NCBI RefSeq assembly: GCF_963921235.1
Contig: NC_086126.1
Coordinates: forward strand, 12,400,001-12,464,000
DNA from: Mobula hypostoma
Lineage: Eukaryota
Direction: 5' to 3'
Length of the DNA: 64,000 bases
The translations under genes were made by a program, and so were the position numbers. The notes beneath the pieces are model-generated. The model had not been told where the DNA came from, made no database searches, and saw only the letters and a list, made by a program, of their open reading frames with translations. Below, piece after piece: positions 1,528 through 11,217 of the stretch. Each line of letters begins with the position of its first letter. The first letter of the stretch is position 1.

Positions 1528-2150
1528 AGGGGCCACTTCCAGCACCTGCACCACCACCACCCCCGTCTGCCACAAGCGAAACTTTTAATTCCGATTTCCA
1601 TTCCCGTTTCCGTTCTGGCGTGTCGGTGCAAGGCCAAAATGTGGTTACCCTCAGGGTGGAGAAACAACACCTTATATTCCGTCTGGGAAGCCTTCACCAC
1701 AATGTCATGAATATTAATTTTCTCCTTGTGGTATAAAAACGTTCCCCACCCCCTTCTTCCTGTTCCCAACTCTGACCTTTCACTTCTTATTACCTCCATC
1801 AGGGTCCCCTCCTCCTTCCCTTTCCCCTATGGTCCACTCTCCTCTCCCCTCTGGTTCCTTCCTCTCTCCCACTCACCCGGCTTCACCTATCACCTTCCAG
1901 CTAGCGTCCTTCCCCTCCCTCCAGCTGCTTGTCCAGACGTCTTTCCCCTTTCCTCTCAGTCCTGAAGAAAAGATCTTGGCCCAAAACCTCTCTTTTCCAT
2001 CGTCCAGCCGAAGGGTCTCGGCCCGAAACGTCGATTGTACTTTCTTTTCCCACATAGATGCTGCCTGGCCTGCTGAGTTCCTTCATAATTTTGTGTTTGT
2101 GTACGCGTTGCTTTGGATTTCCAGCATCTGCTCCTTTCTCGTGTTTGCAA
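1528..2150 (+). mobile_element. 3' continuation of the Penelope-like element (GIY-YIG tail and pLTR with degenerate hammerhead)
   Basis: Matches the [13 protein letters not shown]-coding region and the terminal gatgctgcctggcctgctgagttc...ttccagcatctg motif seen in other copies. Confidence 0.7.
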
Positions 2151-2203
2151 TGTCACAAAAAGAAGTGGGGGGTTGGCGGATTTGGGGGCGGCAGCCCCGC
2201 AGA

Positions 2204-2233
2204 AAGATGGCGTGGCCAGAGCGGGGCGGAAGT
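2204..2233 (+). promoter_or_regulatory. Putative cystatin copy 1 promoter motifs (YY1-like AAGATGGCG; GC-box/ETS GGGGCGGAAGT)
   Basis: Motifs at 2204-2212 and 2223-2233, conserved at the same offset before copy 2. Confidence 0.5.
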
Positions 2234-2294
2234 AACGAGTGAAAAGCGGAGGAAGAGACGCCAACACCTGTTATTTGCTTTACTGCGGAGGAAG

Positions 2295-5200
2295 ATCGGT
2301 GCGGTTCTGGTGGTGTTGGTGTTGATGTTGGGGGCGGCGGATGTGGGGGCGACCTCCATGCCGGGCGGCCTCAGCCCCGTGCCCACAGATGACCCCGGGG
2401 TGGTGAACGCGATGCGGGCAGCGGAGGAGTATTTCAATCGCAGATCCAACGACGAGTTTTACTCCATGGTGTCGAATGTGACATCGGCCGAAACAGAGGT
2501 GATGGGGAGGGAAATAGGAGGGGGAGGGGCGGGAGGAGGGCGGTGGGGGGGAGAGGGAGGGAGGAGAGGGGAAGGCAGGGAGGAGGGGTGGGAAGTGGGG
2601 AGTAGCGAGGAGTGAAAGAGGCAATGGAGAGGGGCAGGGAGGGGGGTAAGTGGGGAATAGACTGGGTGGGCAGAGGAGGGGAAGTGGGGAGGAGAGTGGG
2701 AAGGGGAAGGGTGGGAAGAGGGGGAGGGGAGGTGAGGATGGGGAGCTGAGATGGGATAAAAGGGGAGGAGGAGACGGAAGGAGGGGAGGTGAGGGAGGAG
2801 GAAGATATTGAGGGAGAGGGGGAGACGTAGAGGGAGGGAGAGTGGGAGGAGGGGTGGGAGCGGGGGAAGATCGGGTGGAGGTGTAAGGGAGGGGCAAGAG
2901 GAGGGGAGAGTGGGGAGAAGGGTGTGGGGGAGAGGGCGAGGGAGGATACGGAGAATCTGCACAGAGATATGTATAGGTTAAGTCAGTGGGCAAATGTCTG
3001 TCAGATGGAGTACAATGTTGGTAAATACGAGGTCATCCAGTTTGGAAGGAAAAAAGGACGAGCAGATTATTATTTAAATGGTAAAAGATTGCAGCATTCT
3101 GCTGTACAGAGGGACTCGGGAGTGCTTGCGCATGAATCACGAAAGGTTGGTTTGCATGTACAGCAGGCTATCAAGCAAATGATGTTAGCCTTTATTGCTG
3201 GAGGGATTGAATTCAAGAGCAGGGAGGTTATGCTGCAACTGTACTGGGTACTGGTGAGGCTGCACCTGGAGTACTGCGTGCAGTTCTGGTCTGCTTGCTT
3301 CAGGAAGGATATACTGGCTTTGGAGGTTCACCATGTTGAGACTAGAGAGGAGGGTGTGAGACTATAAGCAGAGATTGAAATGCCTGGGACTGTACTTGCT
3401 GGAAATCAGAAAAATGAGAAGAAATCTTAGAGAAAAATACAATTATGAAAGAGATAGAGCCAGGAACGTTCTTTGCACTGGTAGGTGAGACTAGAACTAG
3501 GGGACATAGCCTCAAGATTCAGGGCAGTAGATTTAATTGGGGAAAGGCAAATTACGATGCTATAAGGCTGGAACTTGCTAGTGTGAATTGGGATGATGTT
3601 TTTGCAGGGAAATGTACTATGGACATGAGGTCGATGTTTAGAGATCTCTTGCGAGATGTAAGGGATAAATTTGTCCCGGTGAGGAAGATAAAGAGTGGTA
3701 GCGTGAAGGAACCATGGGTGACAAGTGAGGTGGAAAATCTAGTCAGGTGGAAGAAGGCAGCATACATGAGGTTTAGGAAGCAAGGATCAGATGGGTCTAT
3801 TGAGGAATATAGGGAAGCAAGAAAGGAGCTTAAGAAGGGGCTGAGAAGAGCAAGAAGGGGGCATGAGAAGGCCTTGGCGAGTAGGGTAAAGGAAAACCTC
3901 AAGGCATTCTTCAATTATGTGAAGAAAAAAAGGATGACAGGAGTGAAGGTAGGACCGATTAGAGATAAAGGTGGGAAGATGTGCCTGGAGGCTGTGGAAG
4001 TGAGCGAGGTCCTCAATGAATACTTTTCTTCGGTATTCACCAATGAGTGGGAACTTGATGATGGTGAGGACAATATGAGTGAGGTTGATGTTCTGGAGCA
4101 TGTTGATATTAAGGGAGAGGAGGTGTTGGAGTTGTTAAAATACATTAGGACGGATAAGTCCCCGGGGCCTGACGGAATATTCCCCAGGCTGCTCCACGAG
4201 GCGAGAGAATAGATTGCTGAGCCTCTGGCTAGGATCTTTATGTCCTCGTTGTCCACGGGAATGGTACCGGAGGATTGGAGGGAGGCGAATGTTGTTCCCT
4301 TGTTCAAAAAAGGTAGTAGGGATAGTCCGAGTAATTATAGACCAGTGAGCCTTACATCTGTGGTGGGAAAGCTGTTGGAAAAGATTCTTAGAGATAGGAT
4401 CTCTGGGCATTTACAGAATCATGGTCTGATCAGGGACAGTCAGCATGGCTTTGCAAACGGCAGATCGTGTCTAACAAGCCTGATAGAGTTCTTTGAGGAG
4501 GTGACCAGGCATATAGATGAGGGTAGTGCAGTTGATGTGATCTACATGGATTTTAGTAAGGCATTTGACAAGGTTCCACACGGTAGGCTTATTCAGAAAG
4601 TCAGAAGGCATGGGATCCAGGGAGGTTTGGCCAGGTGGATTCAGAATTGGCTTGCCTGCAGAAGGCAGAGGGTCGTGGTGGAGGGAGTCCATTCAGATTG
4701 GAGGTTTGTGACTAGTGGTGTCCCACAAGGATCTGTTCTGGGACCTCCACTTTTCGTGATTTTTATTAACGACCTGGATTTGGGATAGAAGGGTGGGTTG
4801 GCAAGTTTGCAGACGACACAAAGGTTGGTGGTGTTGTAGATAGTGTAGAGGATTGTCAAAGATTGCAGAGAGACATTGATAGGATGCAGAAGTGGGCTGA
4901 GAAGTGGCAGATGGAGTTCAACCCGGAGAAGTGTGAGGTGGTACACTTTGGAAGGACAAACTCCAAGGCAGAGTACAAAGTAAATGGCAGGATACTTGGT
5001 AGTGTGGAGCAGCAGAGGGATCTCGGGGTACATGTCCACAGATCCCTGAAAGTTGCCTGACAGGAGGATAGGGTAGTTAAGAAAGCTTATGGGGTGTTAG
5101 CTTTCATAAGTCGAGGGATAGAGTTTAAGAGTCGCGATGTAATGATGCAGCTCTATAAAACTCTGGTTAGGCCACACTTGGAGTACTGTGTCCAGTTCTG

Positions 5201-6427
5201 GTCACCTCACTATAGGAAGGATGTGGAAGCATTGGAAAGGGTACAGAAGAGATTTACCAGGATGCTGCCTGGTTTTGAAAGTATGCATTATGATCAGAGA
5301 TTAAGGGAGCTAGGGCTTTACTCTTTGGAGAGAAGGAGGATGAGAGGAGACATGATAGAGGTGTACAAGATAATAAGAGGAATAGATAGAGTGGATAGCC
5401 AGCGCCTCTTCCCCAGGGCACCACTGCTCAATACAAGAGGACATGGCTTTAAGGTAAGGGGTGGGAAGTTCAAGGGGGATATTAGAGGAAGGTTTTTTAC
5501 TCAGAGAGTGGTTGGTGCGTGGAATGCACTGCCTGAGTCAGTGGTGGAGGCAGATACACTCGTGAAGTTTAAGAGACTACTGGACAGGTATATGGAGGAA
5601 TCTAAGGTGGGGGCTTATATAGGAGGCAGGGTTTGAGGGTCGGCACAATATTGTGGGCCGAAGGGCCTGTACTGTGCTGTTATATTCTATGTTCTATGTT
5701 CTATTAAGACAGAGATGAGGAGGAACTGCTTTTCCCAGAGAGTGGTGAATCTGTGGAATTCTCTGCCCAATGAAGCAGTGGAGGCTGCCTCAGTAAATAT
5801 ATTTAAGACAAGGTTGGATAGATTTTTGCATAGTAGGGGAATTAAGGGTTATTGGGAAAAGGCAGGTGGGTGGAGATGAGTCCAAGGTCAGATCAGTCAT
5901 GATCTTATTGAGTGGCGGAGCGGGCTCGACGGGCCGGATGGCCGACTCCTGCTCCTATTTCTTATGACCAGCAGAGTAAAGGTGGTGGGTGTGTGCAGAT
6001 GGGTGACCACTCCTGGCTCGATACACACAGACACCCTGTAGAGATGTTTTGAGGCCTTTCTGACTGTAATGTGCTCTTGCAGGTGGTGGCGGGGTTCCTG
6101 TACTATCTCACCCTGGAGCTGAGAACCACCGTCTGCAGGAAGAGTTCTCTTTCCCAGGACTGTCCCTTCCACGAGGATCCTCAATATGCCAAGGTGAGCG
6201 ATCAGTGCACTGGTGGTCTCGGGAGTGAGGGGCGGGGGTCCTGTCCCCAGGGACACTGGAACCTGGTGGGGATTCATGAATCTGCTGGGGTACCGGCGGG
6301 AAACTCTTTTAATACTGGCCTCTGCTTTTCCCCGGAGACAATGACCTGTAAATTTCAAGTCCTGCAGCAACTGTGGGTCGGGCCCACGCAGGTGACTGAA
6401 TCTTCTTGCTCCAGGACGGCCAAGTGA
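2295..6427 (+). CDS. Type-2 cystatin, copy 1 (divergent; start codon position is ATC, possibly an incipient pseudogene)
   Basis: Exons 2295-2498, 6083-6193 and 6338-6427 with GT-AG phase-0 introns. Signal-peptide-like N-terminus, [11 protein letters not shown]|VVAG, four Cys, LW in place of PW. First in-frame ATGs at 2325 and 2358. AATAAA at 6842-6847. Confidence 0.8.
2505..2945. repeat. G/A-rich low-complexity tract in cystatin copy 1 intron 1
   Basis: Nearly pure purine with G runs on the + strand. Confidence 0.85.
2946..3536 (+). mobile_element. Older CR1 LINE ORF2 3' fragment, interrupted by a younger CR1 and resuming at 5704-5966
   Basis: LEYCVQFWS-type RT C-terminal motif; the sequence joins up across the inner insertion. 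Confidence 0.8.
3537..5703 (+). mobile_element. 5'-truncated CR1 LINE ORF2 (reverse transcriptase) with stops and a frameshift
   Basis: [43 protein letters not shown] and FADDT motifs; 3' (TTCTATG)n-type tail; TTAA at both junctions. Confidence 0.95.
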
Positions 6428-7512
6428 CCGGTCTGTAGGACCCCGGCGGCACACAGCGTGGCGCGCACCGCTCAGCTAAAGCAATAATTCTGATCACCAG
6501 GTCAAATGGATACGAATACAGCACTTTACCACGGCCCGGGGCGCCTCGTAATGCAATCTCCACAACGCATACAGACAAACGCGAGTGTGTATACACTCGC
6601 TCAGTAATATACATTCCCCAGGCTACTATCTCTCTCTCTCTCTTTCACACGCCATCTTTGAGTTGGAACCCTTGAAAGATGGCTCGTCATAGACATCGAG
6701 GGGCCAAATAACCCGCTCCTGTGCCAGACCGCTGTACGTTCTGTGCTCAGTAGTATTTGGGCTCCAACTCGCGGGCTGACCAGTTATTACCATAATTGTA
6801 TACTGTAATTAATCTGCAAATGTATATTTTTATACTTGCGCAATAAAGTTTTTGCATTCTTAGTCTGCCTGTGTTTGCAATGTTAACAGGGTAACTGACT
6901 GCATGAGGTTAACACAGTACTGACCGCCACGGACTATAGTGAGCCCAGCGATCGTGGTTAGACCCAGCATCTCGATAGGAGCGACCAGTCTCAGTCAGTG
7001 CTGTAATTTCAAACATGGCGGGAGTGTGTGAGACCAGAGGACTCGGCCTCCGAAAAGAAGGTCGTCCTTTTAGGAGGGAGAGGAGTAATTTCTTCAGCCA
7101 GAGTGTGGTGAATCTGTGGAATTGGTTGCCACAAGCAAGCCTTTACGTTTAAGACAGATTGACAGAATCTTGATTGGTCAGGGCATAAAGTGACACGGGA
7201 AGAAGGCAGGAGATCGGGGGCTGGGAGGGAAAATGATGAAATGGCGGAGGAGATTCGACGGGCCAAATGGCCTAATTCTGCCTTCATATCTCACGGCCTT
7301 ATAAAGTGTATTCATCATGGAGAATGTACCGTTTCCCGTTCTCATGCAGGTTTTCTCGTTTCTTTTCCATAGATGTTGAGTTCCTCCAGCATTTTGTGTT
7401 TCTGTGCGCGTTGCTTTGGATTTCCAGCATCTACTCCTTTCTCGTGTTTGCAATGTCACAAAAAGACCAAGACGTAGGGAGATTGCGAATTTGGGGGCGG
7501 AAGCCCCGCAGA

Positions 7513-7543
7513 AAGATGGCGTGGCCAGTGCGGGGCGGAAGTG
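7513..7543 (+). promoter_or_regulatory. Putative cystatin copy 2 promoter motifs (YY1-like; GC-box/ETS)
   Basis: AAGATGGCG at 7513-7521 and GGGGCGGAAGTG at 7532-7543; duplicate of 2204-2233. Confidence 0.5.
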
Positions 7544-7603
7544 ACGAGCGAAGGGCGGAGGAAATGACGCCAACGCCTGTTATTTTCTTTACTGCGTAGT
7601 AAG

Positions 7604-10243
7604 ATGGGTCCGATTCTGGTGGTGGTTTTGGTGTTGATGTTGGCGGCGGCGAAGGTGGGGGCGACCTCCATGCCGGGCGGCCTCAGCCCCGTGGCTACAG
7701 ATGACCCCGGGGTTCTGAACGCAATCGGGGTGGTGGAGGAGGACTTCAACCGCAGGTCCAACAACGAGCTTCACACCGCGGTGTCGAATGTGATATCTGC
7801 CCAAAAACAGGTGATGGGGAGGGAAATAGGGGGAGGGGGAGGGTAGGGAGGGATGGGGAAGGCTGGGTAGGGAGGGAGGCGGAAGGGGTAGGTGGGGAGG
7901 GGAGGGAAAAGGGGTGGGTGGGGAGGCGAGGGGGAAGGGGTGGGGAGGGGAGGCGAGGGGGCGGTGGGGAGGGAGGGGGCGGTGGGGAGGGATGGGGAAG
8001 GCTGGGTAGGGAGGGAGGCGGAAGGGGTGGGTGGGGAGGCAAGGGGGAAGGGTGGGTGGGGAGGCGAGGGGGAAGGGTGGAGAGGGAGCGGGAAGGGTGG
8101 GTGGGGAGCGGAGTGAGGGGGAAGGCTGGGTAGGGAGGGAGGCGGAAGGGGTAGGTGGGGAGGGGAGGAAGAAGGGGTAGGTGGGGAGGGAGCTGGAAGG
8201 GTGGGTGGGGAAGGGAGGGAGGGGGAAGGCTGGGTAGGGAGGGAGGCGGAAGGGGTAGGTGGGGAGGGGAGGGAAAAGGGGTGGGTGGGGAGGCGAGGGG
8301 GAAGTGGGGAGGGGAGGCGAGGGGGCGGGTGGGTGGGGAGGGATGGGGAAGGCTGGGTAGGGAGGGAGGCGGAAGGGGTGGGTGGGGAGGGGAGGGGGAA
8401 GGGTGGGGAGGGGAGGCAAGGGGGCGGTGGGGAGGGAGGGGGCGGAGGGGAGGGATGGGGAAGGCTGGGTAGGGAGGGAGGCGGAAGGGGTGGGTGGGGA
8501 GGCGAGGGGGAAGGGGTGGGTGGGGAGGGGGAAGGGTGGAGAGGGAGCGGGAAGGGTGGGTGGGGAGGGGAGTGAGGGGGAAGGCTGGGTAGGGAGGGAG
8601 GCGGAAGGGGTAGGTGGGGAGGGGAGGGAGAAGGGGTAGGTGGGGAGGGAGCGGGAAGGGTGGGTGGGGAGGGAGGGGGAAAGCTGGGTAGGGAGGGAGG
8701 CGGAAGGGGTAGGTGGGGAGGAGAGGGAAAAGGGGTGGGTGGGGAGGTGAGGGGGAAGTGGGGAGGGGAGGCGAGGGGGCGGGTGGGTGGGGCGAGATGG
8801 GGAAGGCTGGGTAGGGAGGGAGGCGGAAGGGGTGGGTGGGGAGGGGAGGGGGAAGGGTGGGGAGGGGAGGCGAGGGGGCGGTGGGGAGGGAGGGGGGGTG
8901 GGGAGGGATGGGGAAGGCTGGGTAGGGAGGGAGTCTGAAGGGGTGGGTGGGGAGGCGAGGGGGAAGGGGTGGGTGGGGAGGGGGGAAGGGTGGAGAGGGA
9001 GCGGGAAGGGTGGGTGGGGAGGGGAGTGAGGGGGAAGGCTGGGTAGGGAGGGAGGCGGAAGGGGTAGGTGGGGAGGGAGAAGGGGTGGGTGGGGAGGCGA
9101 GGGGGCTGTGGGGAGGGAGGGGGCGGGGTGGGTGGGGAGGGATGGGGAAGGCTGGGTAGGGAGGGAGGCAGATGGGGTGGGTGGGGAGGTGAGGGAGAAG
9201 GGGTGGGTGGGGAGGGGAGAGGGAAGGGTGGGGAGGGAGCGGGAAGGGTGGGTGGGGAGGGGGAAGGGTGGGGAGGGAGCAGGAAGGGTGGGTGGGGAGG
9301 GGAGGGAGTGGGAAGGGTGGGTAGGGAGGGAGGGGGAAGGGATAGGTGGGTGGGGAGGGCGTGGGAAGGGGTGGGGAGGTGAGGGGGCGGTGGGGAGGGA
9401 TGGGGCGGGGTGGGTGGGGAGGGAGGGGGAAGGGGAGGGAAGGATGTGAGGGTGGATGAATACAGAGCTCTGGTGGGGGACTGTCTTATTGATACTGAGC
9501 TCCAGATGATTCGTATCGCATCATTGAACAAAGGGGATGGCGATGGACTTTAGGATGGGGAGGGTGAGGAGAGTAGGGTAGGGTGGGGAGAGGAGGTGAT
9601 AATGTGGGCAGGGGAGGAGGGGGTCGAGAGGGGAGCGGGGTTAGGGTGGGGAGGGGAAGTGGGGGAGGAGAGGGAGAGAATACGGAGAGGGGGCTTGTGG
9701 AGTGTGAGGTGAGGAAGGGATGGGAAGGAAGGGGAAGTGCTGAGGAGTGGAGAGTCGAGTAGGGGCGAGGGAGGGGAAGTTTGCAGGAGGTGGGGAGCAG
9801 AGCGCCAGTGTGGGGGAATTCCCCGAGGCCCAGTGAAAGTAGTTTGTCAGTCGCTGCGCTTCTGACTCTTGCAGGTGGTGTCGGGGTTAATGTACCACCT
9901 CTCCCTGGCGCTGAGAACCACCGTCTGCAGGAAGGTTGAACCTCGTTCAGAGAACTGCCCCTTTCACCAGGACCCTCAATATGCCAAGGTGAGTGATCAG
10001 TGCGCTGGTGGTCTCGGACGAGAGGTGGGGGAGGCGAGTGGGGGGGGGGGTCCCGTCCCCGTTGCAGACTGGAACATGGTGGGGATTCATGTATCTGCCG
10101 GGGTACCAGCGGGGAGCTGAATTTTAATACTGGCCTCTTGTTTCTCCCCGCAGAGAACGACCTGTAGATATAAAGTCTGGTACCGCCCGTGGATCGGGCA
10201 CATGGAGGTGAACAGTGCTGAATGCCACGAGGTGTTACCATGA
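7604..10243 (+). CDS. Type-2 secreted cystatin, copy 2 (136 aa, canonical motifs; at the CST6-syntenic position)
   Basis: Exons 7604-7810, 9875-9988 and 10154-10243. ATG, hydrophobic signal peptide, PGG, Q|VVSG (QxVxG), two Cys pairs, PW. AATAAA at 10477-10482. Confidence 0.92.
7820..9450. repeat. G-rich compound tandem repeat in cystatin copy 2 intron 1
   Basis: Recurring unit ggggaaggctgggtagggagggaggcggaagggg; it produces the spurious Pro- and Gly-rich ORFs. Confidence 0.9.
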
Positions 10244-10644
10244 CCGGACTGTAGGACCCTGGGGCGCACACAGCTCTGCGAAAGCAATAATACTGATCAG
10301 CACTTTACCACAGCCCCGGGCGCCTACGTAACCGAGGGCCAGATCGCCCCACAGCCTCTGCTCGACCTTTATCCGTTCTATGCTCAGCAGTATTTGCGTT
10401 TCAACTCACGGGCTGACCAGTTATTACCATAATTGTATAATTAAGCTGCAAATGTACATGTTTTTTAATCTTGCACAATAAAGCTTTTGCATTCTGAGTC
10501 TGCCCGTGTTTGCAAAGTTAACGGGGTAACTCGGTGAATGAGGTCGGCCCAGCACTGGCCACCACGGACTGTGGTGAGCTCGGCGGTCAGTCAAGAATTC
10601 TTTTAATTTCAAGCATAATAGAATATCTGACACCTTGTACGGTC

Positions 10645-11217
10645 AGTGGGCACTTTTATCGATACCTCCTGCTCCTAATATAGCCACTGGGTGTACGTTT
10701 GTGGTCTTCTGTCGCTGTAGCCACTGTTCGAATTGAAAACATTCACTTCAATCTTCGAAGGTGCTGTGCGCTCAGAGATGTTGTTCCGCACACCACCGGT
10801 GTAACGGGTGGTTATTTGAGTTACTGCCGCCTTCCCGTCAGCTTGAACCAGGCTGGCCGTTCTCCTCTCCCATTAAACAAGGCGATTTTGCCCACTGAAC
10901 TGCCACTCGCTGGATTTTTTTTTTAAATTATCACACCATTGTCCAAACTCTGTGAAAATCCCAGGAGATCAGCCGTTTCTGAGATCCTCAAACCACCCAG
11001 TCTGTGACTTGGCTCAAAGGGCCGACTCGTTCCTGTATCTCAATAAATAAAATTTTTTTTAAAGTCTCTTAGATCATCTTTCTCCCCGACTCTAGTGTGC
11101 AGCCTGAGCGATGACAGAACCTCTGGACCGTGCCTGCGTGCTTTTGGGCATTGAGTTGGCGCCGGGTGAGTTAGCGAGCAGATGTACTGGTGTATCTGAT
11201 AAATCGGACACTGAATG
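10645..11217 (-). mobile_element. Non-autonomous Tc1/mariner-like element
   Basis: cagtgg-cacttt terminus; internally colinear with 56490-57030, which carries a Tc1 N-terminal HTH remnant. Confidence 0.65.

Follow-up and report, generated by a model that had tools for sequence, protein, structure and literature searches.

Two tandem cystatin genes of the devil ray Mobula hypostoma differ most in the exon for the C-terminal hairpin, probably a trace of past selection on the protein

A stretch of 64,000 nucleotides of the Mobula hypostoma genome (contig NC_086126.1 of assembly GCF_963921235.1, positions 12,400,001 to 12,464,000 of the forward strand; hereafter the window) carries two type-2 cystatin genes, A and B, which lie in tandem on the + strand and have three exons each, with GT-AG borders for every intron. 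Their third exons (6338..6427 in A and 10154..10243 in B, both of 29 codons and a stop) appear to encode the C-terminal beta-hairpin of the inhibitor and have diverged far more than the remainder of the two genes. The excess is found at replacement sites and is absent from silent ones. The explanation that we consider fairly probable, judging from the sequences, is that the hairpin exon, a module of its own in a cystatin array that evolves by birth and death, was under diversifying selection in the past.

The coding parts of the two exons (6338-6424 and 10154-10240) are equal in length and in phase and align without gaps. They differ at 37 of the 87 bases and at 22 of the 29 residues. A recount reproduced exactly the figures given in an earlier note on this DNA: each of the 22 differing codons alters the residue, the seven common residues (T, C, V, W, G, V and C) use identical codons in A and B, and the substitutions are distributed as 13, 17 and 7 over codon positions 1, 2 and 3, which places 30 of the 37 at the first two positions. 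The continuing similarity of the neighbouring non-coding DNA, also claimed there, was found as well. Intron 2 differs at 18 of 143 positions (12.6%), and the 3' untranslated region (3'UTR) differs by 12-13% over its first 53-60 nt and by 14.8% distally. Divergence amounts to 11.2% upstream of the genes, 15.2% in exon 1 and 13.6% in exon 2.

A scan of 1076 aligned positions placed the start of the most divergent 87-nt segment at 6338, exactly where exon 3 begins. In 5000 permutations no such segment attained 37 mismatches, the mean of the permuted maxima being 22.5. The divergence of exon 3 is 3.4 times that of the flanks, and the comparison with the immediate flanks (37/87 vs 25/203) yields a Fisher p of 4e-8. 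The block of high divergence extends from the first coding base of exon 3 to the stop codon. When exon 3 is excluded, the sole heterogeneity left is in the G-rich repeat with which intron 1 opens, and the 989 flank positions contain neither a stretch of conspicuously low divergence nor an identical run of exceptional length. The two copies of exon 3 agree in GC content (0.54 and 0.53), so that there is no sign of compositional bias, and this was rejected as a cause of the excess.

The nature of the changes points in the same direction. According to the method of Nei and Gojobori (NG86), the replacement rate (dN) in exon 3 is 0.76 and the silent rate (dS) 0.28, giving a ratio (omega) of 2.7; for exons 1 and 2 together dN is 0.17, dS 0.19 and omega 0.89. 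Replacement changes in exon 3 are in excess when set against the silent sites of the whole gene taken together (p = 8e-5), against replacement changes in exons 1 and 2 (p = 1e-7) and against non-coding DNA (p = 5e-11). At silent sites exon 3 has not diverged more than the other exons (dS 0.28 vs 0.19-0.29 elsewhere, Fisher p = 0.73), and its third codon positions are not elevated either: 7 of 29 (24%) differ in exon 3 vs 18 of 105 (17%) in exons 1 and 2 (p = 0.42). At codon positions 1 and 2 taken together the numbers are 30 of 58 vs 32 of 210 (p = 7e-8). A pairwise maximum-likelihood codon model, written for the comparison of A with B, returned an omega of 5.0-5.6 for exon 3 and of 0.7-1.1 for exons 1 and 2 with one silent rate over all exons. 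The likelihood ratio test of exon 3 against omega = 1 gave p = 2e-5 to 9e-7 under this shared rate, and exon 3 taken alone gave an omega of 7-8 (p = 0.015-0.004).

An exon that is merely older would show its excess first at silent sites, and the absence of a silent excess argues against that possibility. The limits of the block, a splice acceptor on one side and a stop codon on the other, fit selection on the protein, because conversion tracts would not respect such borders. It appears that protein-level selection fits exon 3 better than either an older exon or an artefact of gene conversion.

The fast exon corresponds to a distinct part of the predicted protein. Both proteins match the Pfam Cystatin profile (PF00031) with 50.3 bits for B and 64.0 bits for A vs a gathering cut-off of 22.2. 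The AlphaFold2 (AF2) model, made for B, has a predicted local distance difference test (pLDDT) score of 79 and adopts the cystatin fold, in which a five-stranded sheet wraps a helix. A Foldseek comparison of this model with cystatin C structures gave target template-modelling (TM) scores of 0.91-0.94 at a root-mean-square deviation (rmsd) of 1.2-1.3; the match to 8v57_D (cystatin C) had E = 2.5e-10, TM 0.77/0.91 and rmsd 1.2. In the model exon 3 of B covers residues 108-136, with a strand at 108-118, a short loop containing P119-W120 and a second strand at 123-134. As modelled, exon 3 corresponds to a complete structural unit, the C-terminal beta-hairpin made up of strand 4, loop L2 with Pro-Trp, and strand 5. 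Both Cys of the second disulfide lie inside exon 3. Among 17 sequences C97, C111 and C131 are invariant and C87 is nearly so, and A and B have all four. The seven residues common to A and B are the structural frame of the hairpin, around which nearly all other positions have been replaced. In complexes of cystatins with papain, loop L2 with its PW is one of the three wedge elements that enter the active-site cleft of papain-like cysteine proteases.

Gene B is a working gene, as indicated by its canonical motifs, its RefSeq protein and its high RNA depth. Exon 1 (7604..7810) has an ATG followed by a hydrophobic stretch, taken on visual inspection to be a signal peptide, contains GG and an SNN site and ends in ...QKQ. 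Exon 2 (9875..9988) opens with VVSG, which completes QVVSG, and is followed by an intron 2 of 165 nt (9989..10153, GT...CAG), by exon 3 with the B-type hairpin and a canonical PW, and by a 3'UTR (10244..10500) with AATAAA at 10477. The N-terminal Gly (GG), the QxVxG of loop 1 (QVVSG) and the PW of loop 2, which make up the inhibitory wedge, are all present, and the protein of 136 residues is identical to RefSeq XP_062892616.1 of M. hypostoma. In two RNA-like runs of M. hypostoma the exons of B are represented by RNA contigs with no differences (over exon 1, contig 7608-7798 with 0 other letters), which reach about 10483 in the 3'UTR. The joints 7810|9875 and 9988|10154 are seen in RNA at a depth of 8.6k-12k, the second of them in RNA contigs X5, X7 and X13.

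Gene A is probably a decaying or silent copy. Its exon 1 (2295..2498) comprises the signal peptide region, the N-terminal Gly and an SND legumain-type site and ends in ...ETE. It has ATC where B has the ATG start codon; no in-frame ATG was found upstream of this ATC, and the first in-frame ATG, at 2325, leaves about 10 residues before the mature N-terminus. Exon 2 (6083..6193) opens with VVAG... and holds the first disulfide and the appending loop. Intron 2 (6194..6337, 144 nt, GT...AG) ends in an unusual GAG acceptor directly before exon 3, and the 3'UTR (6428..6870), with AATAAA at 6842, contains about 200 nt that are absent from B. With E replacing the Q of QxVxG (EVVAG) and LW replacing PW in its A-type hairpin, the protein departs from the inhibitory wedge pattern. 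Exact RNA contigs over exon 2 of A were not found, as X5 has no depth there and X7 only contigs with other letters, like those of a paralog, although such an absence from assembled contigs is weak evidence. The RNA runs contain a fraction of 0.06 of the sequence words of 6083-6427. One RNA contig over the 3'UTR of A (6415-6801) has 4 other letters and would probably derive from a paralog. The RefSeq model of A, XP_062892617.1 (P0010), corresponds residue by residue to 2325-2498, 6083-6193 and 7373-7477. It starts at the internal ATG, skips exon 3 and takes a 34-residue non-cystatin tail from a cryptic exon (7373..7477, + strand), which lies within a repeat upstream of B and is joined to exon 2 of A. 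The model probably reflects an annotation error in a decaying gene, or else a read-through transcript.

The wider family was studied in a set of 16 members from M. hypostoma, M. birostris and Hypanus sabinus. Exon 3 is the most variable part of the family, with a mean pairwise identity of 0.51 and a mean column entropy of 1.20 bits. The corresponding values are 0.77 and 0.57 bits for exon 2, and 0.70 and 0.74 bits for the mature part of exon 1. A word-indexed protein search at E <= 1e-10 returned only Mobula and Hypanus proteins, and more distant elasmobranch cystatins were obtained through a representative search. The A-type hairpin is nearly unchanged in five other Mobula proteins, and A has 27 of the 29 residues in common with the intact P0007 and P0009. 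Since the hairpin of A is only two residues away from intact genes of its type, the decay of A does not explain the divergence of exon 3. The B-type hairpin recurs in P0002 (27/29), in P0001 of M. birostris (22/29) and in P0004 of Hypanus (19/29). Both types of exon 3 are present in M. birostris, and A-like and B-like forms occur in H. sabinus, which indicates that the divergence of the hairpins is old. For the most part it seems to have arisen between paralog lineages before or around the split of Mobula and Hypanus. In exon-wise trees B joins P0004 of Hypanus in exon 3 (97/93) and in exon 2 (85/76).

The 22 differences were polarised with third-party paralogs and shark outgroups (Heterodontus and Carcharodon). 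Ten were assigned as derived in B, five as derived in A and four in both, and three were ambiguous; five of the 22 differing sites are common lineage by lineage across genera.

Several intact-looking members have altered contact loops, with QVVFV or QVVWV for QxVxG in P0005, P0011 and P0013 and, in the latter two, TA in place of PW. Several paralogs of the array are without the Asn of the legumain-type SND site. On the basis of these sequences the array seems to include non-canonical cystatins.

A number of observations weigh against reading these data as positive selection. The NG86 test of replacement vs silent changes inside exon 3 alone is only marginal (p = 0.06). All rate tests rest on a single pair of nucleotide sequences and on 29 codons, and the strong likelihood ratio test presumes one synonymous rate across exons. 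The tree of exon 1 is discordant, with exon 1 of A failing to group with the A-type genes, and P0002 combines B-type exons 2 and 3 with another type of exon 1; the discordance and this mosaic show that the array recombines upstream of exon 2, and recombination can inflate omega. Four pairs of presumed orthologues from the two Mobula species, compared at the protein level, showed changes at 13.8% of residues in exon 3, 13.3% in exon 1 and 8.7% in exon 2. These values do not differ significantly and are about what is predicted by the neutral divergence of 5.1%, as measured over 9414-10434 in a DNA contig of a second species (X9). Finally, both lineages of exon 3 seem older than the split of Mobula and Hypanus, with flanks that are only about 13% apart, and this would fit homogenised flanks too.

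The interpretation in the earlier note, accelerated protein evolution of exon 3 of the kind typical of positively selected defence or toxin genes, consequently holds in part. The acceleration itself is borne out by dN above dS, by a pairwise omega between A and B of 2.7-8 and by the excess at replacement sites. Positive selection as its cause is less secure, given the marginal test inside exon 3, the age of the divergence, the lack of an exon 3 excess between the Mobula species and the apparently non-functional state of A.

Past diversifying selection on the hairpin nevertheless remains the account that we favour. After the duplication, the fixation of replacements in the hairpin would have outpaced that of silent changes several-fold in the paralog lineages, in both of them but more in that of B, whereas the rest of the gene and the short intron would not have exceeded the silent rate. 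Inhibitors with differing spectra of targets would have been the likely outcome. Since the separation of the two Mobula species, change in the protein as a whole would have been roughly neutral in rate, and exon 3 would not have stood out. A, though decaying or silent, would have retained an almost unchanged A-type hairpin, with B as the working gene.

The strongest competitor is a mosaic history, in which the types of exon 3 are older than the remainder of the genes, gene conversion or unequal crossing-over homogenised exons 1 and 2, the introns and the UTRs, and selection removed variants with a converted exon 3. We regard it as unlikely, yet several of the above observations speak for it: the exon shuffling or conversion evident in P0002 and in exon 1 of A, the A-like and B-like forms of exon 3 already present in Hypanus together with the five sites common across genera, and flanks that differ by only 11-15%. 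The silent divergence of exon 3, which such an age should have raised, is not elevated, although with 19 silent sites this speaks only weakly. The exact limits of the divergent block and the lack of any low-divergence tract in the flanks also count against it. Moreover, a mosaic history also needs selection that keeps the hairpins different.

In this respect intron 2 is informative, as it is equally similar between genera. An isoform of Hypanus sabinus, P0018, reads through intron 2, and its translation matches that of intron 2 of A at 36 of 48 positions, vs 25 of 37 positions in the adjacent exon 2. Intron 2 of A is open and in frame by chance (48 codons), and that of B has indels and a stop and is non-coding. 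Conversion between A and B cannot act between genera, and the similarity of the intron is therefore not a product of it. Better conserved than the exons beside it, the short intron 2 may be a constrained splicing or regulatory element. Since the intron may itself be constrained, it is a conservative-looking but imperfect neutral yardstick.

Relaxed constraint, in which A is a pseudogene whose exon 3 drifted without adaptive change, would be in line with the loss in A of the ATG, of the Q of QxVxG, of the P of PW and of a good acceptor, with its absence from RNA and with an omega near 0.9 in exons 1 and 2. Drift, however, gives an omega of at most 1 and a rate like that of the intron, and decay would strike all three exons alike. 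In addition, most of the polarised changes are on the lineage of the expressed B, and intact P0007 has just 8 of the 29 residues of exon 3 in common with B (counted by eye from the alignment), which indicates a distance like that of A. With these points, the omega of exon 3 and the match of the A hairpin to intact paralogs, pseudogene drift was rejected as the explanation of the excess and is in our view very improbable. That the exons are non-homologous, misaligned or frame-shifted has a negligible chance of being true: the share of mismatches does fall to 28% in a gapped nucleotide alignment, but this artefact is ruled out by equal length and phase, both Cys, the Trp, the Gly and two Val in register, flanks homologous right to the exon borders, the RNA joints of B and the occurrence of both types of exon 3 in RefSeq proteins of three species.

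A and B belong to an array of at least 10 secreted type-2 cystatin genes in tandem. A tblastn search with both proteins as queries revealed no third copy within the window, and at least eight more cystatin proteins map to the contig that carries A and B. The array adjoins genes for BAF and EIF1AD, and in M. birostris the orthologue of B (P0001) adjoins a SAM_BAF gene.

An upstream open reading frame (ORF; MAWP.RGGS.E...) is conserved before both genes, at 2207-2242 and 7516-7599, out of frame with the cystatin ORF; that of B stops a few bases 5' of the main ATG. The RefSeq models of the paralogs P0003, P0011, P0016, P0017 and P0018 begin within this region, which leads to long, odd N-termini. 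Intron 1 of B consists almost entirely (7828-9434) of a minisatellite whose sense strand is G-rich. Its unit measures about 24 nt, and a higher-order period of 454 nt shows 91% identity. Intron 1 of A opens with a shorter G-rich block (2500-2950); RNA contigs have no depth over either block. Very high-copy interspersed repeats occupy 4650-5900 in intron 1 of A and 7050-7450 between the genes, and in one DNA run from a related species their contig depths add up to millions. A block found upstream of both genes (2071-2163 and 7374-7466) belongs to such a high-copy repeat. A search of Rfam over 1900-10800 (E <= 1) identified no known RNA elements, the hammerhead included, in the UTRs and introns of A and B.

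Among solved structures the best matches in sequence (E = 3e-25) and fold are type-2 cystatins, namely human cystatin C (PDB 3GAX, 8V57) and chicken egg-white cystatin (1CEW, 1YVB). B shares with them a putative signal peptide, the four Cys, the N-terminal Gly, QxVxG and PW. The human CST genes have the same three-exon layout, in which QxVxG is split at intron 1 and exon 3 opens three residues before the third Cys. Unlike in human and chicken, the ray genome has at least 10 tandem copies, the hairpin is rewritten between copies, and several copies are without the Q, the G or the PW. The position beside BAF and EIF1AD and the Ser-Asn-Asp/Asn legumain-type site in A and B recall cystatin E/M (CST6), for which a human 'BANF1-CST6' locus, with CST6 beside BANF1, has been described (PMC9333104). 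Human CST6 is single-copy, whereas the ray array is multi-copy. Judged by profile E-values, the sequences are nearer to CST3 than to CST6: the profile search gave E = 3e-25 for cystatin C and chicken cystatin vs 1.8e-17 for cystatin M.

In serpin reactive centres, ovomucoid third domains, snake PLA2 and three-finger toxins the contact-coding blocks likewise outpace conserved introns and UTRs. The ray genes resemble these families in that the target-contacting block outpaces introns and UTRs, in dN above dS and in the tandem genes with birth and death; they differ in fold and target class and in that the burst in the rays is old and not ongoing. Such a pattern is classically known from the reactive sites of inhibitors and from the genes of toxins, and it represents no new principle.

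The earlier note had raised a venom or mucosal role, with reference to cystatins in stingray venom tissue, where 'Cystatin-2'-like transcripts are indeed among the most abundant (PMC6315956). The cystatins known from venom tissue (a transcriptome of Potamotrygon motoro and a barb proteome of Neotrygon kuhlii) come from the same order, Myliobatiformes, and from other genera than Mobula. RefSeq names the Mobula and Hypanus genes cystatin-2-like, comparable to the naming of those transcripts. M. hypostoma, a devil ray, is not known to have a working sting. Our literature search returned nothing relevant on Mobula cystatins, on this array or on the tail spine of M. hypostoma, and a venom role for A or B is a guess.

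More tentatively, and with rather more doubt than confidence, we suggest that the 29-codon hairpin exon might serve as the specificity cassette of a cystatin repertoire of the Myliobatiformes at the CST6/BANF1 locus. Its 10 or more tandem genes would combine a near-constant scaffold and a conserved short intron 2 with a hairpin of their own each and, in some, a rewritten loop 1. Together they could form a panel resembling innate defence, directed against varied foreign or conflict-driven cysteine proteases (of parasites, pathogens, sting tissue or uterine secretions), and the intron might have been kept for the inclusion of the tiny terminal exon.

Contact surfaces of inhibitors that evolve faster than silent DNA usually signal an arms race or a division of tasks among paralogs, and few such cases have been documented in cartilaginous fishes. 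The fast part is here one exon and one structural module, so that swaps of the hairpin could readily test the idea. The locus beside BANF1, the site of the single CST6 in mammals, offers a concrete place to ask why the relatives of the stingrays expanded their cystatins.

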